A stretch of DNA of 64,000 bases from positions 806,001 to 870,000 of the forward strand of contig JAHLTZ010000001.1 of the NCBI GenBank assembly GCA_025786725.1. The letters run 5' to 3'. The position numbers and the translations under genes are program-made. Source of the stretch: Syncephalis fuscata S228. Its lineage: Eukaryota > Fungi > Zoopagomycota. This document shows, piece by piece, positions 8,297 through 50,532 of this stretch. Below the pieces are notes generated by a model. That model was not told the origin of the DNA. It was given only the letters and a program-made list of their open reading frames with translations, and searched no databases. Numbering within the stretch: position 1 is the stretch's first letter; every line of letters begins with the position of its first letter.

Positions 8297-9531
8297 AACA
8301 CAAAAAATATTTAGCTTCACGTGCACCCGTGTGGATACGAGAATTTAGAATGGTCGTACTGGAAAACTTCAAACATGGCTATTTTCTAACAAAAAAAGGC
8401 AAAAGTGTATCACATGTGTGCACTTGAAATAAGTGTTTTAAAAGCTGGAAAGCTGGCAATATTTAATTGGTGTTACTGAAACTATTAGGTATAATAGTTT
8501 ATATACAGCATTAATAGCTAAATACTATTGCGCAGTTATTTATGTATTTTATGCTAACAATCCATTGTATACCATTTATATAATATCAAGTTGTAACTAT
8601 ATTACTTTATTAGCTTAAATGTGCCGTATCATAGTTGTGAATCAATAATTGAGCAGTAGGTTGCGCTTAGGCAGAATATCAAGGCCTATCGAAAAATGCA
8701 CACATAAAATAATTGAATTCAATCCAACCCATGGAATAAAGGCTCCGCAATTATCATAAATAAATAAGCTAAAAAATTAAAAGTTTATAGTTACGCAGAA
8801 TGACATACAAAATAATTAAATTACTAAACAAGTATAGTTTTGAGCACATATTAAAACAAAAATATTATTAATATAAAAAAGTGAATGATCATACTATTAC
8901 AAATCTAGTTAAAGAAGTTGCAAATTAAATGGTCAAGTAGCACCTTATCCCGACATTACTTTGTATATACTAACAAAAAACAATGCAATGGTATTGCATT
9001 GTATGATGGCCAATGGATAAACACTATTTTTTAGCTGAAAGCTATAATTCCAAAAGTTTTGTTTATTAATAATACATGTTAGAATGTAGAGTATGCGTAT
9101 GGTGATTATATGATATCACTTATTATTTATTTTGTTGACGTGTGTTAGACGCAATGTTTTTTTAAAATTATTATTTAAATTAAAGTATAGCAGCATGAAT
9201 ACGGACAGCAATATTAATATGTTACTAAGTAAGAAGAAAGAGAAAGAAAAATGTAGTGATGTAGATTGTCAAATGTTCAATAAATATAAGCAAATTTATA
9301 ATACTGATGTTATTTGACACCAACACTACCCATTAGCATAGAACATATTTTTAGTATTAATCAGTATATCAAAAGCTTAAATACATATAATAAAACAATT
9401 AAAAGTAGTCCAATAATGGACTAAAGAATAAAAGTTAATCGACCCAAAAGCATCTTTATTATAAAATAATTAAAGTGAAGCAATAAAAATGTATTATTAT
9501 TTTTTGTCATTTTTTTAATAAGCACAACAGT

Positions 9532-10852: not shown

Positions 10853-11674
10853 AGCAATCCGTTTATAACTGTTGTACGCCAATTTAGTAGTATGTTAGCA
10901 CAAATGACAGCTTTATTATTGCACAGAGCGGATATCGACAGACTGAATCCCGGTGACCCTTCAAACACATGCCAGCACAACTATGTCATTGGTTGCACTG
11001 TCAGCTAACAAAAGAATTTCTCCTCTGACCCCGTATCATTAGCAATCAGAGCTATCGCTAACGAATGTAATTTCGAAGCAAAAGCAACAACTCGATATCA
11101 ACAGGTTTGGCTGTTTCATATGCGTGCACCCCTGTTATTGATAGTGAAATTGTTTACATCGTGCATCCACTTCTTTATGGCCTTAGCTTTTCGCCCACGT
11201 ATAGATACCAAGTGCAACTTCAAATGGCTGTCATCCATTAGCCGAGACAGAACTGGTTACTCGCCTTTCGTATGCTTCAATTCTACTTGCTTGTCCACGT
11301 GTTACATGCAAGAAGACTTGCCATTGGCTGCTTGGTGAACCTGCGTTTTTTCTTTTCCAATGTATTGCTGAGGACAAAGAGGCAACTGAGTTGCCGCATC
11401 GAGGTAAACGAATATCATATAAACCATGTCGTTTTTCAACGTCTTCAGTTCGGTGTTTACCTACCCCGCCACAACTTACTACAGCTACTTTACTATAGCC
11501 TTGTCGATCCGTTATTCCGTTCACTATTAGCGGCTTATTTTATCCTACGTAATTCTCCTATTAGGTATACTATATTATTATTTCCAACTTGTTGGTTATT
11601 ATTACACGCAATCGACTTGCGTAATTCTTGATTGATTCTCTCTATTCGACTACGAATACTATCATTAGTAAATT

Positions 11675-12502
11675 ATGAAGTTCTCCACAGTTGTTGCTGC
11701 CATTGCCACGTTGGCTATTGCCGCTCAATCGGCCGATGCCATGGATCCAAACAAGATTCTTTGTCTTGTAAACGAAGTCCGTGCTCGTAATGGTAAGCCA
11801 GCATTGAGACTTAATGTTGGCTTGAATCTTGGAGCTGCCGCCTACAGTAATGTCATGTCCACTATTCTACAAATTGGTCAACGTCCAAGCCACAATTTCG
11901 GCCCCGTAGGATTCCAGCAACGTCTTGACTCTATTCTTGCCCCTCTTGGTTTGAAGTTGGGATCTGAGAACACTTACAACGGTAAGGACACCGAAAAAGA
12001 AGTTGTTGACGGCTGGATCGCTTCCCCAACACATTACCAGAACATTCTCTCCGACGCTACCGATATGGGTGTTGCTTTGGCTACCAGAGGCTCACAAAAG
12101 TTCTGGACTCAAATCTTTGGTACTGATGGTAAGCAACACAGTTACCCAGTGTGCCCCGGAGCGAGCCCAACTCCAGCTCCAGTCCCGGCTTCTCTGCCTC
12201 CTCAGGTTCCAGCTCCTCAGGCTTCAGCTCCTCCAGCCCCAACCCCAGTTACCTACACTCCAGCTCCTCCAGCCCCAGCCCCAGTTACCTACACTCCTAC
12301 AGCTCCATCGACTCCAGCTCCAGCACCACGTAAATGCCACAAGAAAGTACACCATTGCAACGAAGGTGAAAGCAAGTGCGACAACGGCCAAATCTCACAC
12401 TGCCGTCGTGGTCGTTGGGAAGTAGCATTCTGCCCAGCGAGCCACTACTGCAAGGTTGACTCGCCCATCAAGGCTTGCTGTGCCAAAGTCCCAGGCTATT
12501 AA
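11675..12502 (+). CDS. Secreted CAP/SCP-domain protein with Pro/Ala-rich linker and C-terminal Cys-rich (CBM19-like) module
   Basis: Signal peptide; LVNEVRARNG, SEN, WIASPTHYQNIL and FWTQIFG CAP motifs; PAPAP linker; CNEGESKCDNGQISHCRRGRWEVAFCPASHYC. Intronless. Confidence 0.88.
   Translation: MKFSTVVAAIATLAIAAQSADAMDPNKILCLVNEVRARNGKPALRLNVGLNLGAAAYSNVMSTILQIGQRPSHNFGPVGFQQRLDSILAPLGLKLGSENTYNGKDTEKEVVDGWIASPTHYQNILSDATDMGVALATRGSQKFWTQIFGTDGKQHSYPVCPGASPTPAPVPASLPPQVPAPQASAPPAPTPVTYTPAPPAPAPVTYTPTAPSTPAPAPRKCHKKVHHCNEGESKCDNGQISHCRRGRWEVAFCPASHYCKVDSPIKACCAKVPGY
12225..12296 (+). repeat. 36-bp tandem duplication in the CAP protein linker
   Basis: cagctcctccagcccca(a/g)ccccagttacctacactc x2, one mismatch. 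Confidence 0.9.
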
Positions 12503-13840: not shown

Positions 13841-15947
13841 AGCATCAGATTACAATATAATTAAACAGTTTAATCATTAGTATTTTCATTATTTGGTATC
13901 ATGCTCAATAAAATAAATATGTACTTTTCTTAATTGAATATTATCAATTGTAATAGTTTTGGCGCAAATAATTAAAATAGTTGACTAAATTAATTATTTT
14001 TAACAAATTATAATACCACCACAGCCATTATTTAAAACGCAGACAATTATTAAAAAGTATAATTTCTATATAACGATATCGGTGATATTGTATTTGAATG
14101 GGGTATGCGACCAGTGCCGCTTCTCCTTACCCCTTTCCAGCCAACGGCGATAGTTTACATGCTGGCTGATTAGTATTATTAAAGCAATGGTATCTCCTTT
14201 TCGGTCAGCTCTTCCCCTTGTCTGAATGATTAAAAGTGCGCTACTCGAAGAGCGCAGCTAATCAACTATTCCGCTTAGCAGCACCATGCACTACCCCTCG
14301 CCAGAGCCAGAGTAGGCATCAAAGCTATATCACAAGTGGGAACGACGCTCGGTCACCCCCATGGCTAAATTCAATACCAGCTAGTTGCTAGTAGCGCTGA
14401 CAACACTAGTACAGCTACTAGGCACAGCTATCTTCCAAGGCATTCCCCACTCCTTTTTACACCACCATGTGGTATATGGCTTCAGTAATTCAAGGATAAC
14501 GCACAGTACTGATAGGATTAGCAACACCTTGTAACATCCACCGATAATCGCTGTATAAATGTCCCATCATTTACCTGTAATGGTTGGTTTATTCAACTTA
14601 TGCTTTGATATTAGGACATCTTCAACGCCGCACTATTACATTCTTTAGTTTACTTGTGAAGATAAATTGTGTACTACCTTGCCATTGACACGCCGAAGTT
14701 TTCATACTGCCATTTGTACGTTTTGCTGCAGCTGACGCCACCAATCGACCATCCATTCTCTCTTTTTTCTGTGTGCGTGCGTCTGCGTGCGGATACCTTT
14801 CTACTACACTGTTTGCCTGTGCTGCTACATTCAAGCATTCGCAGTCACACTGTTACTACTGAAGTTTTATATGCCAAGACTAAAGTCTGAAAGCAGAAAA
14901 AACTAATCGTGTTATCTCAGCCACTGGTAAGTCAAAAATAGCAATAGCGTCGATAGTGTATTTTAGTAGATATAGATCTATAGATTTATATTGCCTTTTA
15001 TCTCATTATGGATATGCCAATCTATATGACACATGGTCATTGGATATTATTGTCATGTTTATTTTTATTTCGTAAATGGTCTTAACACTTTTTTACTTTA
15101 TCTCAATCGCAAATCTGCTTGCATGGTCGTTCAAATATTCCTGATATGTGCTGCATAGTCGTTGCTGTTTTCCTGTTTAATTTTACTCCTACCTCCTAAG
15201 AAAATGGTTGAGAATTACCATAATGGTACATTGCCATTGAAGCTGCATCTGCACTTGCTTCATCGCTGCGATTGGCCGTAAAGCAGTCGCCCATTTGAAT
15301 TTTGGATGGTCAGTGTAGCTTTTTTGACAGCCATAGCACGCCACTTGTTTTTGTCGGCATTGTTCGCGCCATATTGGTAAAGTGCCGAATAGCTGTGTTC
15401 TTGTTGGTTGAAATCAATCGTATTTGAGCTACCAAGAATAGCTTACCGATTTTAATCCGGTTATCTATAAACAGCATCGTTCTACGGCCACTTGCTTATT
15501 CGGATACATCTTGCTCCCCCCAGAACACAATGGCCTTTTCCATTAACGATAGTGACTGGTATCAACAGGCTAGCTTCCATTTCCATCATCAGAGTGATCA
15601 CGGACAAGCCTTCGTGTTCCCAACACCGATACACAGACCGTACAAACGTGCATGGGTTTACAGCGACTAAATTAGCTCCTCTGTGCATGCAAAACACTGT
15701 GCATCATAAAATTGCATTGCTGACAACCGTGACAGCACTACCATCACCGGCAATTGTGACCGCAGTTCATTTTTCCGATAGTATCACTACTACCGGCAAG
15801 TAAAAGTCTTGCTGCCAAGCCCTTTTATTTTTATTTTCTGTTTGACACAATCATGGATGGCGATTCGTCATGGTTGGCACCACACGTAGACGGCCATTTG
15901 TACATATTTTTACATGTGGGCACCAGGGTTGTAGCGCTATCTCTTGC

Positions 15948-16078
15948 TCGTATAGCGGATCCGTATTCACTTGGTGCCCATGGTCCAATTAACTCGCCTT
16001 GAATGCTATTATGGTGGATGTATTCAAGGCGAGCCAATTAGGCAATAGGTACTAAGTGAATACGGATCCGCTATACGA
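15948..16078. repeat. 131-nt hairpin (59-bp stem, 13-nt loop)
   Basis: Arms 15948-16006 and 16020-16078; outer 25 bp perfect; 50/59 Watson-Crick pairs. Confidence 0.9.
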
Positions 16079-17440
16079 ATAAATGTCATTGTGAGTGTAT
16101 AGCTGCTTGGAACCAATACGCGACGTTACACTTTTGGCTGGTGTCACCAGTAGTTCTTCGCCTTTCTTGGCCCCATGCTGTTGCTTCTATGTCTATTTCA
16201 CGTCACGCTCGAGACGATTGGCTTCATACTTTGCAGTATACGATGGCGCACGTCCCCATGGCATTGCTTCTAGCATAGCTATTTTGAGATGCATGTTACT
16301 GCACGAAGAAAAAGCATTTTATACACCTGTTACTATTGCTATTGCTGCTTCTGTTGCCCACCGATAGATGGTAGTGCCTCCCGCTCGTCTGAAACCATAT
16401 GGTGGCAACCTGCTTCTTATCAAACTAGTCGCTAGGATCTTGTCAGGCGATTAAAGCAGATTGTGTTGCACATGCTCATTGTTACAGTCTTTCATGTTTT
16501 TCCCAGCTACCAAAGCTTGAATATTTAAACTCCGCTCGCTTTATGTCAGAATAATGGGCACGTTAAATGCTTTAGAGTTGGTTAACAATGCTTTTATTGA
16601 GTATGAGTATGTACAGCTGTATAATAGCTGTAAAGCTGGTGATGTAGCATTAATGTCAGTGTATGTAATTGCTAAATTAGGCAACAGTTCGGGTCTCAAT
16701 AAGTTTATTGGATATTGTGATTGGATAGTCCACTGATATAAAAGAAGCGGACTAAAGGTGGTGTTATCGCTTCTTTCTAATAATTCCTCTTGACTGGCTC
16801 ACCTCACGACGCATCTTTTTCATTGCCAGCTCACAGTGCAGGTACCACCGTCCCAGGTCTTTCTTTGTTTATTTCATCCTTTTTTGACCTATCTGTCTCC
16901 TACACGAGGACGTTACAATTACTAGCCGCGTGACCTATATTTATTGTTGTGTTGCTTAGGTGGTCGTTCCCACACACAGTTTGCTATCTCACTGCCAGTA
17001 AAAAACACCATAGGCGTTTTTTACAGTTAAAAGCACTTCTTTGCCACTGTACCAGCCCATTTGGTACTGACTCATCGTTTTCTTATTCCGTCACGTCCAC
17101 ACGTCACCACACGATTGTTCTTGGCCCTTCTACTTGTTTCTACTCCGTGTACCTTTTGGCCATTTGTCTTATTGAGATCCTCCACAACACTTTTACTCAA
17201 TCCATTTAGCTTTCATAGAGTTTGACTGTCATACACCTGCTCTGTGAGTAACGAAGCTGATCTTTGCTTTTATGTGGCAAAGCAGCAGCTTAAACTGAAT
17301 CAAGTCTTTGCATATAGACCATATGCTAATATGTGCTTTATTTTTCTTTAGACATACGTTAACAGTCATTTCTTTCGACTATTACTACTGTTGCCGCCGC
17401 TGCTACCAACACCAATACCACTAAACACAAGCGTGATAAA

Positions 17441-19084
17441 ATGTGCGAGGATCCATTCGACTCGTTTGTTGACATGCAAATGATTGACGACACTATGAAC
17501 AGTCTTGCATGCACATCTGCATCCCAATCACCAACAATGTCTATATCCCACCTACCTGAAACTACGAACTTTTCGCTACATCATCAGTGGAATCATATGG
17601 CAGCCAGTGCTGCACCTACCATGTCTGCACCAGGTGGCGTAACATCAGGATCTGCTGCATCCGAATTGTTCAAGTATTATCTACAAGACCAGCTTTCGCT
17701 AATGGAGACCAATCCAGAGGCTGCCGCCGTAAATGCTGCCGCTGTAGCTGAAGTAGCCGCCGCTGCTGCCACCGCTGCTGCAGCAGCCGCTGCCGCCAAC
17801 CGAGTATCGTTATCAGCGGCTGCACAGCAGGCTAAAAACATCTTTGATCATTATCCCACGTCCACCGACGATCCAGCCCTTCTAACTCCGAAGACAGAGC
17901 CAGAATCACCGCTCCAAGGCTTCTCTACCTTGCCTGGTCTAATGCCGTCCGAAACTGATGCCTGGATGAATCAGCTTCTTAAGCCAACCACGCTATCGGC
18001 TGGCTCGGCTGTACAGCCATACCAAGTGCTATTAAATCCACTAAAAGCACAGGAAGTCGACCATCTACACGAAGAAGAGACTCGGCACTTTACCAAGCCA
18101 ACTCCTTCAACGTACGCCGGTCCACGTCGTCATACTCGTAAACACTCGCAGTCCAATCCTTATCCTACCTTTTCGACCGTTTCTGAGCTTAATACGTCAG
18201 TATATGCGAATAATAATAGTAATAATAATGCCCTAAATGCATCTACAAATACTATTGGCGATAAAAGCAGCTCGTCGTTACGATCTGGCAGCACTCGTAC
18301 GATGCCACGACGCAACAGCAAACTATACGATCGTGGCAGCGTTTCGCACAGTGATGAAGATATGGAAGACGAGGATATGGTTAACGAGCTTCTTTCTCTA
18401 CGCAATGGCGTAGTCCAGCATGGCCTTAATACACGTCGTGATCCATTGCCAGATGAAGATGAAATTCGTAAAATGACACCCAAAGAACGCCGTCAGTTGC
18501 GAAACAAGATTTCAGCTCGCAACTTTCGACTTCGCAGAAAAGAATATATTGGTACGCTAGAGGCTGAGGTAAAAGAGGTACGCAACGAGCTTAACGACTG
18601 CCGTACACGTTGCAACGACGCCGAAATTGAAAACCGTGCGCTTAAAAAGGAACTGAACTCAATTCGCGACCAATTGGAAATGGCATTGGCAGCTGCCACT
18701 GCAGCTAACTTGCCGGATCTTAATATGACTACATCGTCAACCTTTGAACGCACATTGCTAGCTCATAGCACTCTGTGCACGCCATTGTCACCGGCCACTA
18801 GCTGTGCTTCCACTGCAACATCGTCGGATCATATTATGATGTCACCCTCTGCTTCGCCGTCAACGCCGTGCTGCAACTCATTTAGTCTATTAACTCAAAA
18901 ACGACAAATACATCGCAATCCTACGAGCACACCTTTACTTACACGCAACAACTCTCCAGCACCGGTGGCCAATTCTCAACGGCTAACGCTAAATACCGAT
19001 GATATCCACCAAAACTGCTCGACAGCCAATGGCACTGCTGTATCTCATGTCAACTGGAACAAAAGCCGGCTTATTGTTCACTAA
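17441..19084 (+). CDS. bZIP transcription factor
   Basis: KERRQLRNKISARNFRLRRKEYIGTLEAEV basic region plus leucine zipper; poly-Ala and Ser/Thr-rich regions; likely 5' UTR intron 17245-17351. Confidence 0.92.
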   Translation: MCEDPFDSFVDMQMIDDTMNSLACTSASQSPTMSISHLPETTNFSLHHQWNHMAASAAPTMSAPGGVTSGSAASELFKYYLQDQLSLMETNPEAAAVNAAAVAEVAAAAATAAAAAAAANRVSLSAAAQQAKNIFDHYPTSTDDPALLTPKTEPESPLQGFSTLPGLMPSETDAWMNQLLKPTTLSAGSAVQPYQVLLNPLKAQEVDHLHEEETRHFTKPTPSTYAGPRRHTRKHSQSNPYPTFSTVSELNTSVYANNNSNNNALNASTNTIGDKSSSSLRSGSTRTMPRRNSKLYDRGSVSHSDEDMEDEDMVNELLSLRNGVVQHGLNTRRDPLPDEDEIRKMTPKERRQLRNKISARNFRLRRKEYIGTLEAEVKEVRNELNDCRTRCNDAEIENRALKKELNSIRDQLEMALAAATAANLPDLNMTTSSTFERTLLAHSTLCTPLSPATSCASTATSSDHIMMSPSASPSTPCCNSFSLLTQKRQIHRNPTSTPLLTRNNSPAPVANSQRLTLNTDDIHQNCSTANGTAVSHVNWNKSRLIVH

Positions 19085-31319: not shown

Positions 31320-34300
31320 ATGAATTTTAAAAACACATTCATACAAGCTAGAAAGGAATGCCAACCACCTAATGTAAGAATAACATAGTAAATTATTATA
31401 GGGCATAGTAATGAGCAATATTATACATATACATGTGTATATAACACTTTAGTTATGTGGTATTGACTTGGATGCAGATACGCGTCTTTGGTATTTACCA
31501 TCAGAGGTCAAACATCCATTCCGCGATATCATCGGTGAGGCGTCCTTTTATTTACTAGAATGCAATGTTGGGCCGGTCAGTATGAATATAATGGGCACTA
31601 TAGTTGATGTTGATACTGTATCAATAGAGTAAAATAGCCCTTTTACCCGTTGAATGTTTATTGATTGATACACCATCAACAGCAGCAATAGTAACACCAG
31701 AATGCATAGCTAATGATGACAGTAAAAAGTCTAATGCAGGTTATTAATACTAAACATAACAAATTTTATTCTAATTAGTTTGGACAATAGAATACACAAC
31801 AGTGGCTATGGCCAAATAATATGAATTCATTCTGCCCACTTAAATATCAACATGCCCGGTAAGAGTGGTGCAGTTTATCTACACTATTTAGTATTAAATA
31901 CCAATAGACGCTATTTATCGTGTATTTCAGAAGCAGGTGTATTAAAGGAGACAGAAGAAATAAGCGCGCTATTTGTCTATTGTACAACAGCAGACATGAC
32001 TGATAGGATGTTATTGGGTATACATCATATTGAAAATAAAGGTTAGTCAGTAGTTTTATATTTCTGCGTATTTTTAATAGTTTAATAAACAAATGACAAT
32101 TTATTTATATAGGATTTGAGCGTAAAATAGATCAAATTACACGACAAGGTAATAATAGCAAATATAATTATGGAAATATGGTCATTTATTTTAACGTGTA
32201 GGACAAATGACCAGTAAAGAAGCATTAAAATCAATAGTGACCCTGATGGATAGTGAAAAACAGTCAGTAGGTAGAATGATAATAAATACAATAGCGTAAT
32301 TATATGTCAATATAGTTGATGTTTTCTGGTACTTTTGATATTGTGCCTCCCACCTCGGTAAATAATAACAATAATAACAATACCACCATTTCTACTAGTG
32401 CAACTAATGAGCTATCTATTGGTAATAATATAGCACTCTAGTAGTTATATCACACTGAAAGCCACTTGGCCCAATACATACAAAAATATTGTTGATACAT
32501 ATAAACATATTGAAGATACTACTGACACTGACGATGGCAATACTACACATTCTAAACATTGGCTATGGCCTAGTTATACCCAATGTGAATTACTAGTGCT
32601 AGTAAGAAGTAAATAGCCATATGTAACTAATAGCTAATCAAACCATTAGACAATACAAATGGCGTCTTGTTCAGTCGATTCCGAGGAGAATGATGTACTT
32701 TCAGTGCTATCTAATCAATTAAATCGATGCATTGAATGGTGTACATCGATAAAAGCAAACGCTGGGATGTGGCAGTGTTCCACTAATTCATCTGACACAG
32801 TGCCGTTCACGCAACGTGTTGAGCAATTTTTATTGTCCTATGCTCGTCGCGATTCATCTGCCATCGCCGATATCATCTATCAATCGTGTAACTTTTCTAC
32901 ACCTATTACAAATGCATCAATCAAATTACGGGAACTCGACTTTACAGAGCAGTTATGGCAACTATGTCAAATGGCCAATGACCAAGAAGAAATAGCCGAT
33001 GCTATTTATGCCGTCTTAGAAGAAGTAAGATCTGGTCGAGTCCAACCGACGGTAAGCTTTTACATAATATCGACATTGTTATTAATACTAGTACTAACTT
33101 TATTATAATAGATTCATCATTATAATCGTACAACATTGGCCAACCTGATACGTGATGCACGTCGCCTAAATACTATGGTTGATGCCGTTAAGCGAAGACA
33201 GCAGCTTGAGACTATTACCCTTGAAGCAGAACAATGTGTATCATCTCCGTTAAGCTGTATCACTGCCGTGGGTTTAGTTAAATTGCAACAGGATTATATT
33301 TATTATTTATCCGGAGCTGGTAAGTTACCTATCGTTTAATTACTTGACATGTGTACCAAAGGAGCTATTCACAAGCCTTTACTCACACGTAAAATAGACG
33401 GCGAATTAGTTAGTCCATCAAGTTTAGTAAGTGTATCGATAGTATTTTATTAGTGCAGCCTCTATTTTACATTAACATCATAATATCTCATTCTATATTT
33501 TATGCACTGATCTGCAATGTATAGGAATCACTATTTGGCCCATCGTTGTTATCTAACAGCCAAGCTCTTTTGACCCGACTTCAAGTAGCGCATCGTATCA
33601 TGGCGTTAGTTGAAATGCTCCGTATGCATTTACCATTGCTGTCGCGCGATACACTACGCCTACTGATACATGGTCTGTTCACACGTGTAGCGCATGAAAT
33701 GGCCTGCATTGGGCGTAAAGGTACATCCAGGAACGACGATAAGTCTGCAGCACCGATAGCCATTCCCGTCATTGATTGGACCACAGTTACACTATGCTGT
33801 CGGCTGGCCATTCCCCGTCTATCAAGTACGGCTAAAGCATTGATTCGCCGTTTATCAGCCATTGGGTAAGCGCTAATAGAGGACAACAGGTGGTGCATGT
33901 GTGTGGTGAGTGAATGAATGCATGCATGTAATGCCGATAAAAGACACTTTGGACTCTTTGCCAATGAATTAACGTTTAAACTCCGTGTATAGATGTCCAC
34001 CCACGCGGTACGCATTCAACCGGTTACATTGGATGAATATATTCAATTACCGCCACGTTTATCAAATAGTGGAGAAGCAGTGGCAGCAGCTACCGCACCA
34101 ATAACAACCCATGATATACTGCTGTTATTGAATAGTCAACAGCATTACCTGTCAGACACATTATTACCATCTATACCAGATGTCATGTCGTCAAGTGACA
34201 CCATGGCTACTTTAACTATACAGCAACAACAACAACAGCCACATCAGGCCTGCTCGCCGTCACTAAATGACAGTACCACAGTCGTCTCATATCCAGCCTC

Positions 34301-34379: not shown

Positions 34380-36402
34380 TTCACAATGAATTTCATGATT
34401 ATGCACTGCACCATGGTCATTATGATGGTACAATATGACGAGGAGAACGAAGCAGGTAGAAATGCCGACACCTTGAATAAATTTAATGGGGCATTCAAAT
34501 AATTAATTACTGTCGGAGTGCAGTGTAAATGCAGAATGTCAATAAAACATGTCCGATCACACAGAAAGGCAATGGGGAAAGTGATTAAGTGGATGGCATG
34601 GAAGGAAGAAAGGAATACCGACAGTATAATAATGCTCAGTAATTCATTTGTAAATTTGGATAGTCAATAAACGAGAATGATGAATAGAAAGAATCTAAAC
34701 TTACTTGACCACGTGCAATATAGCACGCACATCCATCTAGTCTTTTTCTTAGTGGCAGTTTGGACCTGCGCCGTCCCCGTTTTTTCATGCCTTTCTGCAT
34801 AAATATCATATCCACACACGCACACACATACAACTACAAGTATACAGATGCATATCTATCTATATACACACCGGTATTCTCTAGGGCTTATTACGGTGAT
34901 CAGTTTTATTATTACTGTTATTACTGCTATTTCTACATTAGGCCTACTTATTATTAGCCACCATCATTGGTATTGCTATTGCTGCCACAGCGGTTACTAA
35001 AATAGGTCTACCTCGCCCAATCTTTTCTTCTCTCTTTCCCTCTCCTATCTCACTGCCACCGTGCTTCTTTCAATTTCGCTACACAACCGCCCTATTTTTA
35101 TCCTTTTGTTCTTGCGCTTTTACTTAAAAGTCGTAACGGACAATATAAGGGATTCTATATTACAAGTGTTTGATTATCAACTGAGCTATTAATACAGTTG
35201 CTGTCATCGTAAGCGGGCTTACCTCCTAGTGTTGTCGTCGTGTCGTGCTAACTAGTTGGCTTACTTCGCTCGTTCGTCTTAAAACACTATTTTCTTGCTA
35301 CCTTTATTCCTTGCATTGCCGCCTAGTACGTTTTACGTTCATCGTCATCGTTACTTGTGTGAGTGGTGTACGTTGTGTGCCTATAGCATACACGTCCTTT
35401 TTTCTTCTACTTCTTCGCCTATTAGTTTTCTAATACAATTTTCACCACTTTTATTACAACTACTACTCTACTACTCTACTATTACTCTACTATTGTTGAT
35501 TATTGCAGTGGTGACGGCTACTCCCACAACAATATCAATTGACAAACTATTGCAGCGTAAACAAGTTCTATGCACCATCTCTAAACGTGCATCGTAATCA
35601 TTCCCGTCAACCAGCCTTTATTCTATATTTGACTAGGTAAGTGAACAAACGAGCATGTACGATGCTACAAATGTGTCCGTGTCATTCAGTGTATCAAATG
35701 GTCGATTTCTTTACTATATAACCTGTTTCTGTTCGGATTGTTTTATCAATGTCAGTATCAATACGTATAAACAATGCTACGCATCAAATCTAAATCGTAG
35801 TACTGTTTGTGCATATTTAAATTAGTATTGTTAAAACAATACTGACGAAAACAGGTTATGATGGCAAAGAAAAAAGACCACTTTTGGCGTGTAACAAAAT
35901 TCAGGTGTAGCACGGATGAATGCTACTAAAGCTTGTCATTATTGTTTCTTGTATTATTCTACGTTCTACTTGTAGTGGAAGTGTTTGTGTACTTGTCTAT
36001 CGATTTGTACAAGTATTTAGATATATATAGAATGCTCAATCTTTTTTGATAATGCTTTTCCTTTCTATAATGGTCAGCTAAGCCCCGTTTCGTTGTCTCC
36101 TGTTTCAACCTGATTTGCTTCCAACTGTTGCCATTTTTACAAAAGTTCAAGGAAGAGTTTGTTACATTCTCTAACAATATGGGTACGGCGTGTGTATACC
36201 ACCCTTTCTTACCTCTTTCTTCTCGTCTATTTATCTAAATAACGGTTATTACATTTGCTCTTGGTCCTTTTTTTCCTTACTCGCTGTTGGCTATTTTTGA
36301 CCTACATTATACCATATTATCTGTGTAGTCTACAGTAATTACACGTATCGGCTACTACTTTTACTACACTACTACACTACTACTTTTAACTTTTACTCTT
36401 TT

Positions 36403-36434
<32 letters not shown>
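36403..36434. repeat. (TAC)n microsatellite just outside the left inverted-repeat arm
   Basis: tactactactactac... perfect run, with degenerate copies from ~36352. Confidence 0.9.
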
Positions 36435-36506
36435 TTGGTACAAGCTTTTATGTACAATAGTGGTACTTATTCTAGTTCTTCTTACATATCAGCGCCATTT
36501 TAGTGC

Positions 36507-39284
36507 ATTATTTCCAAACTTGTAGTGCAGTCGACCTTTCTGTCTGCAGCACGTATACTTTGTTTTCTTTCTTCTTATTTGCGTGTACGTACGGTGTAGT
36601 ATACGATACCAGTTCAATTGCTTCTCGGTTCCTGCTTCTTATTGCACGGCATATCTAGTCAAAAGGAGCTGGTTCTCTGTTCTTTATTTTCAATTTACCT
36701 TTTTGATATCCACTAGTAAGCATTGGACAGTAGTCTGTAAGTACTGGGCTATAGCGATAATGACCAATCCATCCGTGTACTCTATTGGATGTTGTACAAA
36801 TGTGACTTAGCACATTATATTATAATGCTAGTATAGCGCTATCCATATCCATATCCATATTATTGCTATTATGATGATGATGTAATGTAATGCGGCGGTG
36901 TTTAAAGATGACGTGGCAGGAGTGCGTAATTATTAATTCAAATCGAAGGAGTGTTGTTGAAAGGAGACAATTCTGTGTAAACAAAGAATACGGCAGTTGT
37001 TGCTGTGATGATATGGTTCCCCAGACAACATCGATTGATGACGCAACAGTAGTGCGATGTCGATAACGTTGCTAGTTACGTTGACATGGCGTGCTAGTCA
37101 ATGGAATCAATGTAATAGCGATAATGAGTGAATGAGAGCAGATTGATTGATTAATTGAACACTTGACCACAACTTTTGACATTTAGACATTTACTAATCG
37201 ATGTTATGCGTATTTTATAGACAAATCAGTATGACACGCCTTAGTAGTACACTTGCCTTTGTTGGCATCGCCTGCTTACTGGCTACTACGGCGATGGCTA
37301 GACCTGATGCTCCAACGTATAAGCAACCCATCACGACTTCAATGGGTACACCGGAAGTTTGTAGATTTCCATTCTTTTATGATAATAAGTGGTTTTATAC
37401 CTGCATTGCTACGGATATTGAGCCTGGTAATCCTGGTAAGCCATGGTGCGTGCTTAAGGACGAATATGTGCCAGCCAAGCCTGCAAACAACTGGCTTTAC
37501 TGCGACATGAGCAAGTTCCAATCTGCTGGTATTTTATCCGATGGCCACCGATACTCCTGTCTTCCGCAAACGCTACCTAATATAACATACACTGGCTGCA
37601 TTGGTGACACTGAAAAGGGGCCTTCTAGCTGCAAGACTGATAATGACGGTACTGTGGTTACTGGCTCTTGCCTTACTATAAGGTCTCAATTAGATCTCGG
37701 TGGTGACAATACTGCTAAAACCGGACTTGCCATCTCGGTCGGTGCCAACGACGCAAATTCCGATGATGATTCTACCAAAAAAGGCAGCAATAATGTTGTT
37801 ATTAGCTTGGCTGCAGTGCTCAGCGTCGCCGGCGTAGGCTTATTGGCTGGTCTATTCATTTATCGTCGCCGCCAATCGCGTCAAAATCTATCATGGCGCC
37901 AACAAAATAAAGATGAAGGTCAAATGGAATCGAGCGCAGCTGGCCCCGGATTTGCTGCCATGGCTGCCGTTGGTGCTACCGGCTATCGTGAATCAGCATC
38001 AAGCAGTAATATCTTTTCGCCAGTCAGTCCAGGCGAGCGTATGTACCCAGTTATCAGCACATATACACCTACATTAGGCGACGAGTTAGAGATCCAACCA
38101 GGTGATAAGGTCAGCATTCTTATTGAATATGACGATGGATGGTGCCAGGGTGTCAATCATACACGCGGTGGTCTTAAAGGTGTATTCCCACGTCACTGTG
38201 TTGATATGACTGCCGGTATGCCAGTAGATGATGCAGACAAGACGGTCAATTCAAGTACAGCCACCATCGCCGTATAAATCATCCATTTCGCTTTTAATTA
38301 TCGTACTTTTCTCTCTCTCTTGATTCTTTACGCTCACTCCACTTCCACTGCCAACACAATACACCACATTACACCTACGATATATATATATATACATACA
38401 TATATAATCACATTAACAATAGCCTCCACACCTACATCAGCCACCACCATATTAAACCTTGTTGACAGCCTACCAAATGGCACCGCAATAATGATGATGG
38501 CTACTATTATTATTACAGCTATTATTATTACTATTAACTGTCATCGGTTAACGTAATAATAGTAATGTTGCCGGTATGGCTAACAACAATAAACGATACA
38601 ATGACGCATACGATCCCGTTGCGCTGTTGACCAGCACACAGGACTGTATGCAATCAATGGCGTACGTGTGCGTATAGATGTACGTGTTGATGCTTTGTAT
38701 ATGTGTACGCAAATCTATATATTATATATCCATAGGTGTAATCGTGTTGTAGTGTTATACTTTTATTATTATTATAATCTTGATTTACACTTGTTACTGA
38801 TTAGTATTATATTGCTAACATTAACATTGCCATCACACCACCAACGCCACTACTACTACCACTACCACAACGATAACTAGCACAATCCATACTCCAATTT
38901 CTGTCACAGCCCATCTGTTCTTTTGGTTAAATGCTTGGTTTATTATTTATCCATAATTCCGTTTATTAATTGAGCCATTTGTGATATGCCCTAATTCACA
39001 AAGGTGCTACATGTTTACGCGTTCATTGTTGATTAAATAACGATGATTTACATATAATATTGAGTATATGGTAGATGAATAGCCATATTAAATACATGTG
39101 TTTATGTGTGTGTTTATGTTTGCGTGCGTGTTTATAATATGTATAATAATCATTGTAACAGCTTATACAATTAAATTAAGATGGATCCAATTTAAAAAAG
39201 CTTCTATGTGATGACAATGGCTATATAATAGTTAAATAATGGCAATAAAATGTTAAGTTAGAAATTAGTAATTTATATTGTAAT
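36507..39284 (+). repeat. Left arm of large inverted duplication
   Basis: 36507-37308 is the reverse complement of 42862-43663 (3 transitions seen). 38056-39284 is the reverse complement of 40860-42090 (scattered substitutions, 2-bp CT-repeat indel). 37309-38055 is diverged. Confidence 0.97.
37231..38277 (+). CDS. Type I membrane receptor-like protein A: signal peptide, FN2-like and Cys-rich ectodomain, TM, SH3
   Basis: ATG 37231 after a 5' UTR intron (36737-37220). CRFPFFY..WFYTC..KPWC..WLYC FN2 pattern; TM ending IYRRRQ; SH3 YTPTLGDELEIQPGDKVSILIEYDDGWCQG..GVFP. Confidence 0.88.
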   Translation: MTRLSSTLAFVGIACLLATTAMARPDAPTYKQPITTSMGTPEVCRFPFFYDNKWFYTCIATDIEPGNPGKPWCVLKDEYVPAKPANNWLYCDMSKFQSAGILSDGHRYSCLPQTLPNITYTGCIGDTEKGPSSCKTDNDGTVVTGSCLTIRSQLDLGGDNTAKTGLAISVGANDANSDDDSTKKGSNNVVISLAAVLSVAGVGLLAGLFIYRRRQSRQNLSWRQQNKDEGQMESSAAGPGFAAMAAVGATGYRESASSSNIFSPVSPGERMYPVISTYTPTLGDELEIQPGDKVSILIEYDDGWCQGVNHTRGGLKGVFPRHCVDMTAGMPVDDADKTVNSSTATIAV

Positions 39285-40779
39285 GTACTTGCTTGCTGTT
39301 TGGACTTTACAAGTAAACAGTATCTAACAGATTTAGATTGCGATTCACCATCCCGCGCAATATAGATACGCGCATGAGGTGTATAAGACCAAGTAGCACC
39401 CAGAGCTGGTTTAGACAAGGCATTTGACTGAGGTGGCTGGATAGCTAAAAGAGCTGTAGAATCTAAAGCGATTCCGTCGTCATCTTCAATAGGTTGACGC
39501 ACCGCACTATTTAATATCTATAGATGCATGATTAAATTTAAATTGCTAATAAAACCATTCAACTTACCAAGACTATACTGGAATGTTTGTGAGCTATATC
39601 GGAAAGGACATAAGCCAGTTCTGACATAAGAACATGTCCTAAACACAGTTATAGCATATAAAAGTGACTATTACAGTTATATACCTTGACGTGCTTGGTT
39701 GGATAGTAAAGGTGCCAATACAGCCGATACCGAATCAAGAACAATCAGCAATGGAGACTTTTACGGGAATAGTAGTAAGTAATTAACTCATCAAGTATTA
39801 AGGTTGTTATTCAATATTTATAATTGCTATACTTACTTGAGAGTTACTAAAGCCGCCCAACTGTTCAAGAGCATTAAATACATCATAAATAGTATTGCAG
39901 GAAAATACGCGAACATATTTTAACACCGACATACAATCTATATGATTCCAGTTTTAGTAAATTATATATCAATTTAACATTTAGATACCTTCACGGTTAG
40001 ACCATTGATTACAAAGAAGTGTATATAGCTTATGGGCGGAAAATGAGCCACACGTGTCTATATAGGCAATGAATGGAGTGGTACCATTAGCACTTTGATC
40101 CTGGTTATTATCATTATCATTGTTATCAGTTTGATTAAGCATTAATGAATGTAATAACATAAGACATTGCACAACTGTACTAAAGGCAATCTAGACTCAT
40201 AATCAGTTAATGTCACCTGTTACAGTTATACTATTTAAATATTTACTTGGGTTTTTCCCGCTCCTGCTGGCCCAAATAATTCGGTAATTTGACCTGGCAG
40301 TAGACCTCCATTCAATAATCGATCTATACTAATAGTAGTGATCCTTAAGTATGCTATTAAGCGGTTGCAGATTTAAACTATATATTTACCTAGTGTAGCC
40401 AGTGGATAATCGAGTGCCTGACGGTAGTATTCCAGCTGGAAAAAATGATGTAGCTGATGTAATAAGCGAGCTAGCAGTATCGAGAGAAATATTAAAACTG
40501 TTTATTACTCGACTATACAACTGTTCAACTAGCTGTGCCTTTTCATTATTAAACCAATTCAACCAGATTTAAACTTACCGAATGTGATAGATTTGTTTTT
40601 TGACAAAGCGTTTGTTTGTCAGTAGTAAGTACGTCTTGAGCTGAAAGTAATCGTATATAGTTAAAGCAATGACTACTATTGACGTACTATATGTTATTAT
40701 TACCCGTGTAAATACTGGCATTAGACAATATGTCTAGTACTTCTGCTGGTATTCCGTCAATGTTTGAAAGGCGCGTCAT
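39176..40779 (-). CDS. RAD51 paralog, RAD51D-like
   Basis: Ten exons join in frame. LSTGYTSIDRLLNGGLLPGQITELFGPAGAGKTQ (Walker A), AYIDTCGSF, LIVLDSVSAVLAPLL (Walker B), KPALGATWSYTP. Last intron is GC-AG (39292-39221) and the last exon is PLSSHRSFFKLDPS*. Confidence 0.88.
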
Positions 40780-40859
40780 GAAGTTGTTATGGTATACAGA
40801 TGTATTGACGAAAATAAACAAGCTGGCTGGAATAGTAACCAGACTGTTAAAAACGTTTA

Positions 40860-43663
40860 ATTACAATATAAATTACTAATTTCTAACTTAATATTTTATT
40901 ACCATTATTTAACTATTATATAGCCATTGTCATCACATAGAAGCTTTTTTAAATTGGATCCATCTTAATTTAATTGTATAAGCTGTTACAATGATTATTA
41001 TACATATTATAAACACGCACGCAAACATAAACACACACATAAACACATGTATTTAATATGGCTATTCATCTACCATATACTCAATATTATATGTAAATCA
41101 TCGTTATTTAATCAACAATGAACGCGTAAACATGTAGCACCTTTGTGAATTAGGGCATATCACAAATGGCTCAATTAATAAACGGAATTATGGATAAATA
41201 ATAAACCAAGCATTTAACCAAAAGAACAGATGGGCTGTGACAGAAATTGGAGTATGGATTGTGCTAGTTATCGTTGTGGTAGTGGTAGTAGTAGTGGCGT
41301 TGGTGGTGTGATGGCAATGTTAATGTTAGCAATATAATACTAATCAGTAACAAGTGTAAATCAAGATTATAATAATAATAAAAGTATAACACTACAACAC
41401 GATTACACCTATGGATATATAATATATAGATTTGCGTACACATATACAAAGCATCAACACGTACATCTATACGCACACGTACGCCATTGATTGCATACAG
41501 TCCTGTGTGCTGGTCAACAGCGCAACGGGATCGTATGCGTCATTGTATCGTTTATTGTTGTTAGCCATACCGGCAACATTACTATTATTACGTTAACCGA
41601 TGACAGTTAATAGTAATAATAATAGCTGTAATAATAATAGTAGCCATCATCATTATTGCGGTGCCATTTGGTAGGCTGTCAACAAGGTTTAATATGGTGG
41701 TGGCTGATGTAGGTGTGGAGGCTATTGTTAATGTGATTATATATGTATGTATATATATATATATCGTAGGTGTAATGTGGTGTATTGTGTTGGCAGTGGA
41801 AGTGGAGTGAGCGTAAAGAATCAAGAGAGAGAGAGAAAAGTACGATAATTAAAAGCGAAATGGACGATTTATACGGCGATGGTGGCTGTACTTGAATCGA
41901 CCGTCTTGTCTGTATCATATATTGGTACACCAGCAGTCATATCAACACAATGACGTGGGAATACACCTTTAAGACCACCGCGTGTATGATTGACACCCTG
42001 GCACCACCCATCGTCATATTCAATAAGAATGCCGACCTTATCACCTGGTTGGATCTCTAACTCGTCGCCTAATGTAGGTGTATATGTGCTAACTACAGGA
42101 TATAGGCATTCTGTAGGACTAAGTGGTGAAAGTATTTGACTGTTTTCTTCAGAACCGTAATAACTTGATGTATCGTTATTGATTCTAGAGGTACTTGCAG
42201 CAGTCATAGGAACAGTAAGTTCAGTACCAATAGTACTTGGATCAATTCGTTGCATACTCCTGTCTTCGTACTGCATCGACATACTTTGTCGTGATTGCCG
42301 ACGACGATATACAAATAAACCAGCAAGTAGAGCAATGGCACCTACAAAAAATGTAATACCTAGAACGCCACCAAGACCAATGCTGCTTTTATTGGGTGAG
42401 TCGGTGTTTTCGGTTACAAGAGCCGCTTTGGAAACAGAATCGACGCTTTCCAAGTTTTGTTTTACACTTAAACATGCTCGGTAATCTTGTTTACCACCAA
42501 CGTCAACGAGACATTGAAATATGCCGTTTTTAGTATCAGCACTACATCCCATATATGTCTCATTTTTGACTTTTTGAGGAAGACAGTCTTTACGTACGCC
42601 ATCAACTATAGCACCAGGCGCATGGAATGTTTTCATATCACAGTAGGCCCATTCGGGAGATTTGGCGTTCTGAGAGACATATCCTTTTTTAAGCATGCAC
42701 CATGGTTTGTCGTCCGTGCTACCAAGAGAAATACAAGTTGACCAATACTTTTTACGACTGAAAAATGGTAGCTCGCACGATGTTGGCGTGCCCATAGCAA
42801 CCGTGATGTTTTTACTATCCTGTGGATTGTTTGTAGTATCCTGTGGGTTATCTTGTGAGTTATCAGGTCTAGCCATCGCCGTAGTAGCCAGTAAGCAGGC
42901 GATGCCAACAAAGGCAAGTGTACTACTAAGGCGTGTCATACTGATTTGTCTATAAAATACGCATAACATCGATTAGTAAATGTCTAAATGTCAAAAGTTG
43001 TGGTCAAGTGTTCAATTAATCAATCAATCTGCTCTCATTCACTCATTATCGCTATTACATTGATTCCATTGACTAGCACGCCATGTCAACGTAACTAGCA
43101 ACGTTATCGACATCGCACTACTGTTGCGTCATCAATCGATGTTGTCTGGGGAACCATATCATCACAGCAACAACTGCCGTATTCTTTGTTTACACAGAAT
43201 TGTCTCCTTTCAACAACACTCCTTCGATTTGAATTAATAATTACGCACTCCTGCCACGTCATCTTTAAACACCGCCACATTACATTACATCATCATCATA
43301 ATAGCAATAATATGGATATGGATATGGATAGCGCTATACTAGCATTATAATATAATGTGCTAAGCCACATTTGTACAACATCCAATAGAGTACACGGATG
43401 GATTGGTCATTATCGCTATAGCCCAGTACTTACAGACTACTGTCCAATGCTTACTAGTGGATATCAAAAAGGTAAATTGAAAATAAAGAACAGAGAACCA
43501 GCTCCTTTTGACTAGATATGCCGTGCAATAAGAAGCAGGAATCGAGAAGCAATTGAACTGGTATCGTATACTACACCGTACGTACACGCAAATAAGAAGA
43601 AAGAAAACAAAGTATACGTGCTGCAGACAGAAAGGTCGACTGCACTACAAGTTTGGAAATAAT
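40860..43663 (-). repeat. Right arm of large inverted duplication
   Basis: Reverse-complement match to 36507-39284 except the internal variable segment 42091-42861. Confidence 0.97.
41869..42939 (-). CDS. Type I membrane receptor-like protein B: signal peptide, FN2-like and Cys-rich ectodomain, TM, SH3
   Basis: Signal peptide identical and SH3 near-identical to copy A. Ectodomain CELPFF..YWSTC..KPWC..WAYC with all 8 Cys conserved but otherwise diverged. Confidence 0.88.
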   Translation of the reverse strand: MTRLSSTLAFVGIACLLATTAMARPDNSQDNPQDTTNNPQDSKNITVAMGTPTSCELPFFSRKKYWSTCISLGSTDDKPWCMLKKGYVSQNAKSPEWAYCDMKTFHAPGAIVDGVRKDCLPQKVKNETYMGCSADTKNGIFQCLVDVGGKQDYRACLSVKQNLESVDSVSKAALVTENTDSPNKSSIGLGGVLGITFFVGAIALLAGLFVYRRRQSRQSMSMQYEDRSMQRIDPSTIGTELTVPMTAASTSRINNDTSSYYGSEENSQILSPLSPTECLYPVVSTYTPTLGDELEIQPGDKVGILIEYDDGWCQGVNHTRGGLKGVFPRHCVDMTAGVPIYDTDKTVDSSTATIAV

Positions 43664-44494
43664 ATACTGCAGTAAAGCTTTGCGTTGCGTTCAAATGAAT
43701 AAAAGTAAACGCTATTGAATAAAAGAAAGTCAATAGCAATTGCTAATAGGTGCAATAACTATAGACTATGAAGATATGAAGTTAAATGCAAGTCGGAATG
43801 GCCAACAACAAAGGAAAGAAGACCAAAGGCTTCAAAGACTAAGACTAGCGACAGCTATTCAGATAGACAATTAAGTAAAGTGTGAGTGAGTGTGAAAGAG
43901 TGAGTTAGGAAAGAGAAGCGAGTAGAAGCGTGCAGGATAGCAAAGGATAGCGTGTTAAAACCTGATGCGCATGCCACTTACCATGCAATCCACATGAATT
44001 CACAATAATAATTAAGAACAGGTTAAGAGAAAAAGGCACAAGGTTAAACAACAATGCCTGCTTTCTGTGAAAGGCGCGACAAGGCAAAACTGTCCTACAC
44101 ATGTGCATCTAGAATACATGCAATTTACTTTTATACTATTCATAGTTGCACATCTTACAGTGCCGAGCAGCAATTAAGGGAGTCGAGTATCATCAATGCA
44201 GCCACTATTCCTACCACCACCAACACTATTATTTTATTATTGCTGCTGCTAGTGCTGTAACATCTATGGTGTTACAAATAGCAATGAACAAGTTTATTTC
44301 AATCTAATTCTGCATAATTTCATGGTACTAAGAGTATTGGCACATATGGACTGGCAGAACGCATGTACTATGTCGTGCTAGTTTGTGCCATGTATCAATA
44401 ACCGGTAATGTAAAGTAATGTGTGGTATTAGATAGACAATGAATGAAAACAAATATAAACTCTTTTCTATTACATATGCGACTAGAAACCAATA

Positions 44495-49539: not shown

Positions 49540-50532
49540 CTAATTGAGACTAGCATAATATCTTTCATTATATGGATCATTAATGGTTACATTAGAGGCA
49601 GCCAGTAATATAGGCGTTTCTAATTCCATATTTCTAGATTGGAGTAGTGCTTGTAGATCGTTGGTTCTACCGGCGGAATCTGGCCATGTATTATCGGGAT
49701 AGCAGCATAGCATAGCTCGACGCGTATGTAGAAAGTCTGTCAAGTAGGCGCGTTCAGATCTTTGACCACGCTGCCCGGTAAGATTAATGATTCTTTGGAT
49801 ATTAATATCCGGCTCTGTAAGATGCCAACCATGTTGCACGATTGTATCGTAAAATATAGTGATACCCAGCGCTGATTGAATATTAAGACGGTGGGCAAAT
49901 CGAAGGGCTGGTTCAAAGTACATTTCACGCGCTAGTTTTAGTTGAGCATTGCGAAAGACCGCATCGTTCTGCGCTGTTCTACGCCAGGCATTAGGAAAGC
50001 CATTTAGTTTATTGACACTGCTACGCTGTGTATCACATGGATCGAGCGAGGCAAGACGTCGTAGTTCAGGTATGTAAGAGGCAAATGGATTATTGTCGTC
50101 AAGTCGTTGTCGATTGTATCGTTCAATGACCATTAGTGCATCGCCGGTGGCAGTGGTAAATCCAACCACACCGGCCGTAAAGCCGCGTTTATCATTAAGA
50201 TTCTCTATATAGTCATAATGAGGTCGGTCATCGCCATTCTCAAATGCACTTGTTATACGTCGAGCCACCATGGCTGTGTATTCGCTTGCATCGGCCATTG
50301 GCCAGTGGTCAGTATCGGGGAACTCGCCAACGACCGATTCTGAGTATGAGTTTGCACAGCTATTTGAGCTTTTCTTTAAACGTGAAAACTTAAACGCCGA
50401 ACATAAATCATTATCAGGTAGATAATTCCCCGAGCAGTAACGCCATGCGCCATCAACCATACAACAACAAGCTGTAATGATCAATACAATACTTAATAAA
50501 TGATAATACACCGCGAACAACATTGTATTCAA
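49540..50532 (-). CDS. Secreted GH46 chitosanase, intronless
   Basis: Signal peptide; ITSAFEN (catalytic Glu), YDYIENLNDKRGFTAGVVGFTTATGD (catalytic Asp), YFEPA, FYDTIVQHG, ERAYLTDFLHTR. Confidence 0.92.
   Translation of the reverse strand: MNTMLFAVYYHLLSIVLIITACCCMVDGAWRYCSGNYLPDNDLCSAFKFSRLKKSSNSCANSYSESVVGEFPDTDHWPMADASEYTAMVARRITSAFENGDDRPHYDYIENLNDKRGFTAGVVGFTTATGDALMVIERYNRQRLDDNNPFASYIPELRRLASLDPCDTQRSSVNKLNGFPNAWRRTAQNDAVFRNAQLKLAREMYFEPALRFAHRLNIQSALGITIFYDTIVQHGWHLTEPDINIQRIINLTGQRGQRSERAYLTDFLHTRRAMLCCYPDNTWPDSAGRTNDLQALLQSRNMELETPILLAASNVTINDPYNERYYASLN

Follow-up and report, generated by a model that had tools for sequence, protein, structure and literature searches.

In plastid genomes, which occur as inverted-repeat isomers, and in the yeast 2-micron plasmid, large, identical inverted repeats enclose a unique segment that occurs in either orientation at no functional cost. 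Both cases concern organelle or plasmid genomes present in many copies, and a dedicated recombinase serves the 2-micron plasmid. Here, we are discussing a nested palindrome of two convergent receptor genes, A and B, arranged around a central gene, probably of the Rad51 family, in a 64,000-nucleotide stretch of DNA from Syncephalis fuscata S228 (contig JAHLTZ010000001.1, positions 806,001 to 870,000 of the forward strand). This whole stretch is referred to as the window, and features are given by their positions in it. The closest published case is the flip/flop region of Saccharomyces chromosome XIV, where an inverted pair of paralogues is homogenised within strains and species and the boundaries are constant across the genus (Salzberg et al. 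2022, PMC9731477). The yeast region has been re-inverted repeatedly by crossovers in non-allelic homologous recombination, with no known phenotype tied to its orientation, and the same authors caution that repeats of this kind are beyond the resolution of short reads (PMC9731477).

Two further types of chromosomal system provide a frame for comparison. For the palindromes of primate and mouse sex chromosomes, the parts of the reports consulted describe arms that are kept at >99% identity by conversion, are conserved between species and undergo rare inversions of the spacer by crossover (PMC8327919, PMC3723533, PMC8600007). In the mating-type flip-flop of Ogataea and Komagataella, the consulted parts of the published accounts describe silencing of one of the positions by the chromatin of a centromere or telomere, expression of only one cassette, and starvation as the inducer of inversion (PMC5720833, PMC6692504).

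The Syncephalis locus is likely an old, conserved nested palindrome that is shaped by concerted evolution and passive inversion and in which two old receptor isoforms have been preserved. It extends over window positions 36502-43668 in the order outer repeat, cassette, inner repeat, spacer, inner repeat, cassette, outer repeat. The outer inverted repeat is 807 nt long and 99% identical between its arms (5 mismatches). According to a repeat search and a spliced RNA contig, its left arm (36502-37308, plus strand) comprises leader exon 1 (to 36736), an intron (36737-37220), the splice acceptor, the start codon at 37231 and the coding sequence of the signal peptide up to the residues ARPD. The right arm (42862-43668, minus strand) holds the corresponding leader exon 1, an intron placed by symmetry at 42950-43433, the start codon at 42939 and the signal peptide of B. 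Next to the outer arms lie the two cassettes, which are defined by identity, tree topology, synonymous divergence (dS) and RNA. Cassette A (37309-38055, plus strand, 747 nt) codes for the mature ectodomain, the transmembrane (TM) segment and the cytoplasmic linker and is of the type also found in Syncephalis plumigaleata and on the metagenomic contig L012, while cassette B (42091-42861, minus strand, 771 nt) codes for the B-type ectodomain, TM segment and linker.

The inner inverted repeat, ~1.23 kb in full, has a perfect core of 978 nt (38307-39284 / 40860-41837, 100%) and extends at 90% identity to 38001 / 42145. Its left arm (38056-39284, plus strand) contains the sequence coding for the SH3 domain and tail of A, followed by the 3' untranslated region (UTR) of that gene; the minus strand of the same arm carries the final coding exon and the 3' UTR of the central gene. 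The right arm (40860-42090, minus strand) contains the SH3 and tail coding sequence and the 3' UTR of B as well as the DNA upstream of the central gene. Between the inner arms lies a spacer of 1575 nt (39285-40859). Upon sliding comparison of one arm with the other, identity is 1.00 up to 37308, falls to ~0.5-0.6 over 37309-38055 and returns to 0.96-1.00 as far as 39284. Within the 64-kb window, no inverted repeat of at least 150 nt other than the outer and inner arms was found. That the palindrome is real is virtually beyond doubt.

Much of this layout had been anticipated in the original prediction, which was made from the letters of the sequence. The three differences it had counted in 36507-37308 were recovered exactly (at 36628, 36805 and 36893), and the inner repeats are indeed near-identical. 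The break directly after the signal peptide coincides with the collapse of identity at 37308/37309, the sequences beyond the two outer arms are unrelated in the sliding comparison, and the 484-nt leader intron is a GT..AG intron supported by a spliced RNA contig. The deep divergence of the cassettes, silent sites included, likewise holds, as detailed below for the encoded proteins. The centre had been regarded as a spacer, which is right in so far as the 1575-nt spacer exists; overlooked were the spliced gene within it and a second contig on which the spacer is reversed.

A and B are two intact convergent open reading frames (ORFs) that are 50% identical overall. Gene A (37231-38277, plus strand) encodes 348 amino acids which, on the basis of the ORF, Pfam matches and an AlphaFold model, comprise a signal peptide, an FN2-like, cysteine-rich ectodomain, a disordered stalk, a TM segment, a linker and a C-terminal SH3 domain; gene B (41869-42939, minus strand; ORF and Pfam) encodes 356 amino acids of the same architecture. 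By region, the signal peptides of the two are 100% identical, the variable parts 36.7% and the SH3 domains with their tails 92-99%, and the corresponding dS values (NG86) are 0, ~2-2.6 (saturated) and 0.04-0.07. Both proteins pass the Pfam cut-off for fn2 (PF00040; 29.5 bits for A and 24.9 bits for B at a cut-off of 22.2) and that for SH3_9 (36 and 36.9 bits at a cut-off of 30), and the cysteines are invariant among 19 homologues.

The AlphaFold model of A is confident for the ectodomain (residues ~30-155) and places the TM helix at residues 200-217, with a disordered stalk before the helix, a disordered linker after it and the SH3 domain at the end; when modelled alone, the ectodomain reached a pLDDT of 86.6 and a pTM of 0.78. 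In a fold search, 3 of 48,161 PDB representatives matched the ectodomain at Z >=2, every one of them an FN2-module protein (fibronectin 1-2FnII, PDC-109 and an endocytic receptor). As the Z values are only 2.1-2.3, the ectodomain is called FN2-like, with the modules probably in tandem, and no more. Fold and sequence matches of the SH3 domain in the PDB were generic. Homologues of the receptor occur in Syncephalis, Piptocephalis and Basidiobolus, and proteins matching chiefly via the C-terminal SH3 region are spread across Mucoromycota. A search of the protein atlas with the receptor returned sub-threshold, unnamed clusters only, and a literature search found no paper on a combination of FN2-like ectodomain, TM segment and SH3 domain in fungi.

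Decisive information on the dynamics of the palindrome comes from a second copy. The assembly comprises 29.4 Mb in 371 contigs; the contig of the window (C1) is gap-free over 1.0 Mb, and a contig of 21.8 kb (C56) carries another copy of both A and B. C56 is colinear with window positions 36919-58744 at 98.7-98.9% identity and is apparently an allelic haplotig, ~1.2% diverged from C1. RNA contigs of one sequencing run (X1) hold C56 alleles as well as C1 alleles (window positions 38190, 38193, 40481 and others); thus, the material that was sequenced transcribes both haplotypes, in keeping with a diploid or heterokaryotic state of the organism. Non-haploidy has been reported for three of four Zoopagomycota examined (PMC6784888).

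When the four copies of the inner arm, two from C1 and two from C56, were aligned, 10 single-nucleotide polymorphisms (SNPs) and 2 indels were found at which the two arms of a haplotype agree with each other and the haplotypes differ, and a single site in the inner repeat was arm-specific. In their non-coding part, the two inner arms of one haplotype differ at 3 and 0 sites, respectively, versus 8-11 sites between haplotypes. Because haplotype-specific variants are present in both arms, new variants must have passed from arm to arm in the time in which the haplotypes diverged by ~1%. This pattern is judged to be real, since reads assigned at random among the four copies during polishing would have smeared the differences instead of sorting them by haplotype. 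Arm-to-arm conversion is therefore regarded as established with near certainty, and the earlier suggestion that the flanks are homogenised now rests on 12 haplotype-specific variants shared by both arms versus one that is specific to an arm.

The end points of conversion differ by haplotype. On C1, the tail of B retains a private block (equivalents of 38218-38248, with five amino-acid differences), and the same block is A-like on C56, where conversion extends further into the SH3 tail of B than on C1. Homogenisation is not a general property of inverted duplicates in this genome, because another convergent pair, Pyr_redox_2 paralogues of the AIF/AMID-like type that lie 10 kb apart (G000:C13:549861-560645), is only 66% identical over ~1.1 kb and its arms are not homogenised.

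Simple repeats accompany the palindrome. A (TAC)n microsatellite lies directly outside the left edge of the outer repeat (36340-36440), and (TC)n and (AT)n runs located shortly after the stop codon of A (38300-38400) carry the haplotype-specific indels. Such repeats may mark where a conversion tract ends or have an influence on it.

The second line of evidence concerns the spacer. Aligned in the same orientation, C1 and C56 show 320 mismatches and 182 gap events between the inner arms; with the spacer in reverse orientation, the alignment is gap-free over 1575 nt and has 16 mismatches, with junctions located exactly at the repeat ends. This reversal at the very edges of the repeats indicates that the inner repeats do recombine with crossover. 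We consider it probable that the inversion is a genuine feature of the organism and not a choice made by the assembler, going by the assembled contigs.

The spacer is largely occupied by the central, probable Rad51-family gene (39176-40820, minus strand), for which RNA contig joints and exon frames define ten exons and nine introns, with a start codon at 40782. Eight CT..AC joints in 39518-40703, seen in RNA contigs of run X1, correspond to GT..AG introns of the minus strand. The last intron (39221-39292, GC..AG) spans the boundary between spacer and repeat, as the RNA contig skips from 39293 into the arm, and the terminal coding exon (39220-39176; 14 codons and the stop) is situated within the left inner repeat. 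At the other end, an adapter-bearing RNA contig end at 40820 places the 5' end of the transcript ~40 nt from the right arm. With the exons searched against Pfam one by one and not as a joined protein, the exon containing Walker A (GPAGAGKTQ) matched Rad51 (PF08423) at E 4e-4 and 20.1 bits, which is below the cut-off of 22; the syntenic gene of S. plumigaleata carries PF08423 in the precomputed annotation. Since the central gene meets identical sequence on either side, inversion of the spacer should leave it unchanged. The inversion should, thus, cost nothing, with upstream DNA and last coding exon being supplied by whichever arm adjoins.

The same tiers are present in an independent assembly of S. 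plumigaleata (locus L011), with the outer repeat at 8398-10074 / 16017-17680, the inner repeat at 10803-12087 / 13995-15269 and a spacer of 1907 nt that holds a Rad51-family gene. There, too, the boundaries of the repeats fall at the end of the signal peptide and at the start of the SH3 domain. Both flanks are syntenic, with a DnaJ/DUF1977 gene beside the B-type copy and a Zwilch gene beside the A-type copy; in the window, an ORF at 32659-33108 (plus strand) corresponds in position to the Zwilch gene of S. plumigaleata and matches Zwilch (PF09817) weakly, at E 0.0014 and below the cut-off. Signal peptide and SH3 domain are 100% identical between the two copies of S. plumigaleata and 68-84% identical between the two species. 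When a tree was built from the variable part, the B types of the window and of S. plumigaleata grouped with support of 100/98 and the A types with 87/90, and forcing A and B of the window together gives a tree that is 30.8 log-likelihood units worse (approximately unbiased (AU) test, p=0.0011). A and B types are very probably ancient and older than the split of the species. The original prediction had considered the capture of an ancient allele, and old cassettes common to both species are what the tree and the AU test support. All eight allelic SNPs within the two cassettes (C1 versus C56) are synonymous, from which purifying selection on both is deduced; the cassettes are old and conserved rather than hypervariable.

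A metagenome scan for further loci produced three contigs of at most 1.6 kb without linkage, and a protein search with the B-type variable region detected no additional B-type proteins. The A-type copy of S. plumigaleata (L011:15007-16090, minus strand) is broken by two 1-nt deletions beside A-runs in comparison with the intact A-type gene of L012, and it has been annotated as two fragments, which may reflect a pseudogene or homopolymer errors of the assembly.

As to expression, RNA contigs of the same run, X1, cover parts of cassette A (37279-37739) and of cassette B (42061-42444), so both are transcribed in the same bulk sample; exclusivity at the level of single cells is outside the reach of bulk RNA, and contig depth cannot rank the expression of A against that of B. 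In addition to the leader exon inside the repeat, each position has a distal leader exon of its own, and the flanks differ in transcriptional input. On the left, the Zwilch-side leader exon, of which the 3' end is seen (35607-35636, plus strand), is followed by a GTAAGT donor at 35637 and spliced to the shared acceptor at 37221, as indicated by a loose RNA end at 37218 that maps uniquely to 35607-35633. On the right, the DnaJ-side leader exon of ~255 nt (43982-44237, minus strand), again followed by a GTAAGT donor and spliced to the shared acceptor, is known from a 255-letter loose end at 37220, the last 30 letters of which are unique at 43983-44012 (minus strand); its upstream extent is derived from the length of that end. 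This exon is situated 258-513 nt past the stop codon of the DnaJ/DUF1977 gene and may represent read-through. Left and right leaders are allotted to gene A and gene B, respectively, by position only, as RNA contigs break at 37308 and a leader cannot be linked to a cassette.

Concerted evolution and passive inversion of an old palindrome with two preserved isoforms could have come about as follows. Because Piptocephalis has a single copy and no repeat, the palindrome probably arose within the Syncephalis lineage, where a receptor gene would have been duplicated in inverted orientation so as to flank a Rad51-family gene. As the variants shared by the arms show, homologous recombination has kept copying one arm onto the other, and the 5' leader, the intron and the signal peptide in the outer repeat, like the SH3 domain, the 3' UTR and the intergenic DNA in the inner one, are thereby held near-identical on each chromosome. 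The cassettes would be kept apart by selection against chimeras together with a divergence too great to recombine, and conversion would thus halt at two codon positions that are the same in the two species. Whenever a conversion is resolved as a crossover, the DNA between the arms would be flipped, and for the inner repeat the outcome is directly visible in the opposite spacer orientations of the two haplotigs. Judged from their architecture, A and B might act as co-expressed sensors with differing extracellular and juxtamembrane specificity and one common SH3 output.

Several points weigh against this reading. The fixed outer orientation is thinly sampled, as trustworthy structure is available from two haplotypes and one other species only. 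L012 has the A type on the DnaJ side; provided that this contig was assembled correctly, its arrangement would agree with a functional swap. The flank-specific leader exons show that the two positions are not transcriptionally equivalent, and leader exon 1 itself begins at most 100 nt from the edge of the outer repeat or beyond it, so that the promoter may be flank-specific too. Finally, either contig could show the spacer in an arbitrary orientation if no reads extended across the 1.2-kb repeat.

The latter point is central to an alternative that we regard as unlikely, namely that the palindrome is static, with conversion proceeding without crossover and the spacer orientation of C56 being an assembly artefact of an unresolved repeat. 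A perfect repeat of 978 nt defeats short reads, a point stressed in PMC9731477, and the only two runs containing this DNA are stored as short-read contigs, which cannot span the repeats. Furthermore, the start of C56 falls within the left outer repeat and the left flank was not found again on any other contig of the assembly, so the assembler struggled here. However, the gap-free 1.0 Mb of C1 suggest long reads, and the spacer of C56 is a distinct allele (16 SNPs) with clean junctions. The haplotype-specific variants shared by both arms imply, in addition, that reads were phased across the arms; polishing with multi-mapping reads would have blurred the copies.

Unlikely, too, is a functional flip-flop, in which outer-repeat crossovers, with or without inner ones, would move A and B between the promoters and leaders of the Zwilch side and the DnaJ side, e.g., depending on the host. 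The layout invites this interpretation: two cassettes are placed between inverted repeats that demonstrably cross over, each flank gives a leader exon of its own to the shared acceptor, the outer repeat extends only 235 nt upstream of the donor of exon 1, and the architecture has persisted from a time before the two species separated. Moreover, L012 has an A type where S. plumigaleata and this genome have a B type; this metagenomic contig, which comes from another organism, consists of the DnaJ-side flank, outer repeat, A-type cassette, inner repeat and a spacer oriented as in S. plumigaleata, and its cassette is 77% identical to the A type of S. plumigaleata and 32% to its B type. Little weight is placed on this swap, because the path of the contig through two repeats of at least 1 kb may be arbitrary; the sample is short-read, and an independent short-read assembly of it breaks within the locus, near the repeats, with a spacer piece that begins approximately at the end of the inner repeat.

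Further evidence speaks against a switch. B adjoins the DnaJ gene in all three trustworthy haplotypes, with C1 and C56 sharing the same right flank and S. plumigaleata agreeing with them. Both cassettes are transcribed in one RNA sample, with an identical proximal leader exon for each inside the repeat, and the break of the RNA contigs at 37308 ties no leader to either cassette. Neither a silencing context nor a site-specific recombinase or a nuclease site was seen at the locus: the neighbours are Zwilch-like, DnaJ/DUF1977 and GH46 genes, the centre is a probable Rad51-family ATPase and not a dedicated recombinase, and the repeats measure ~1 kb, as opposed to the short sites of invertons, shufflons and FLP. 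The original prediction had a crossover invert the interior and swap the cassettes between promoters. Two of its elements stand, as the repeats do cross over and the flanks do have leaders of their own; the inversion that is seen, however, took place between the inner repeats, and it turned round the Rad51-like gene while the cassettes stayed where they were. Regulated switching of receptors did not find confirmation in view of the constant position of B on the DnaJ side, the transcription of both cassettes and the purifying selection on both, and programmed switching of cassettes or promoters is unsupported and improbable.

A related version, for which we see only a slim chance, is a nuclear locus with four isomers, at which outer and inner recombination shuffles the two ancient cassettes between flank-specific promoter and leader contexts and flips a recombination gene. 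If true, it would give a coenocytic mycoparasite heritable, reversible variation in the pairing of sensor and regulatory input and would constitute a receptor counterpart of the yeast mating-type flip-flop without a dedicated recombinase. Switching by conversion from silent donor copies into a single expression site, as in variant surface glycoproteins (VSG), pilins or the HO/MAT type, does not match the locus: both copies are full genes with start codon, signal peptide and SH3 domain, both are transcribed, and the cassettes are distinct in both haplotypes. That the palindrome itself is a chimera of two haplotypes or of whole-genome amplification, which the original prediction had named as the outcome that would remove the structure, has practically no chance of being correct even though several relatives were sequenced from amplified single cells (PMC6784888), as the arms hold different, intact and anciently diverged cassettes, the structure is present on two contigs here and in the independent assembly of S. 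plumigaleata, both cassettes occur in RNA contigs, and each haplotype has both A and B.

With concerted evolution and passive inversion as the preferred reading, the locus is of interest for three reasons. First, the whole cycle that is usually deduced across strains, i.e., conversion, differing end points of the tracts and a crossover product on the second haplotig, is visible in one individual. Second, the escape from homogenisation acts at the level of domains and has been kept since before the species split, with SH3 domain and signal peptide evolving in concert and the ligand-facing and juxtamembrane core persisting as two conserved types. Third, the genes represent an undescribed receptor family of Zoopagomycota (FN2-like ectodomain, TM segment, SH3 domain), the duplication of which is specific to a genus of obligate mycoparasites.

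Outside the palindrome, the window contains an intronless ORF of 330 amino acids (49540-50532, minus strand) that matches glycoside hydrolase family 46 (GH46; chitosanase) at E 8e-45. In S. plumigaleata (L011:1017-1430) and Piptocephalis (L021:13477-14756), too, the receptor family has a GH46 gene nearby, a microsynteny kept in mycoparasites of Mucorales. The cell walls of Mucorales are rich in chitosan.

In comparison with the systems introduced at the outset, the locus differs from plastid inverted repeats and the 2-micron plasmid in being nuclear and chromosomal, with no recombinase in sight. Sex-chromosome palindromes, as described in the consulted parts of the reports, have arms of tens to hundreds of kb with identical gene copies, while the Syncephalis arms measure ~0.8 and 1.2 kb and their paired genes have a diverged core. 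With the mating-type loci of Ogataea and Komagataella, again on the basis of the parts consulted, the locus shares two alternative cassettes between inverted repeats, the positions of which would be exchanged upon inversion by homologous recombination; unlike there, transcripts come from both Syncephalis cassettes, there is no known silencing context and the outer repeat has not been observed to mediate an inversion.

The likeness to the Saccharomyces flip/flop region is closest. In both cases, long and near-identical inverted repeats are present, the arms are more alike within a haplotype or species than between them, both orientations exist (in Syncephalis on the basis of assemblies), and the boundaries are conserved across species. 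In Syncephalis, the host is a zoopagomycete and the state is heterozygous in one assembly, with orientation data for two haplotypes only. The yeast region spans 24 kb with 15 genes, whereas the Syncephalis locus encloses a single gene of 1.6 kb, for which the arms provide the last exon and the upstream DNA. Unlike in yeast, finally, the Syncephalis repeat is two-tiered, being split by an ancient cassette that escapes conversion.

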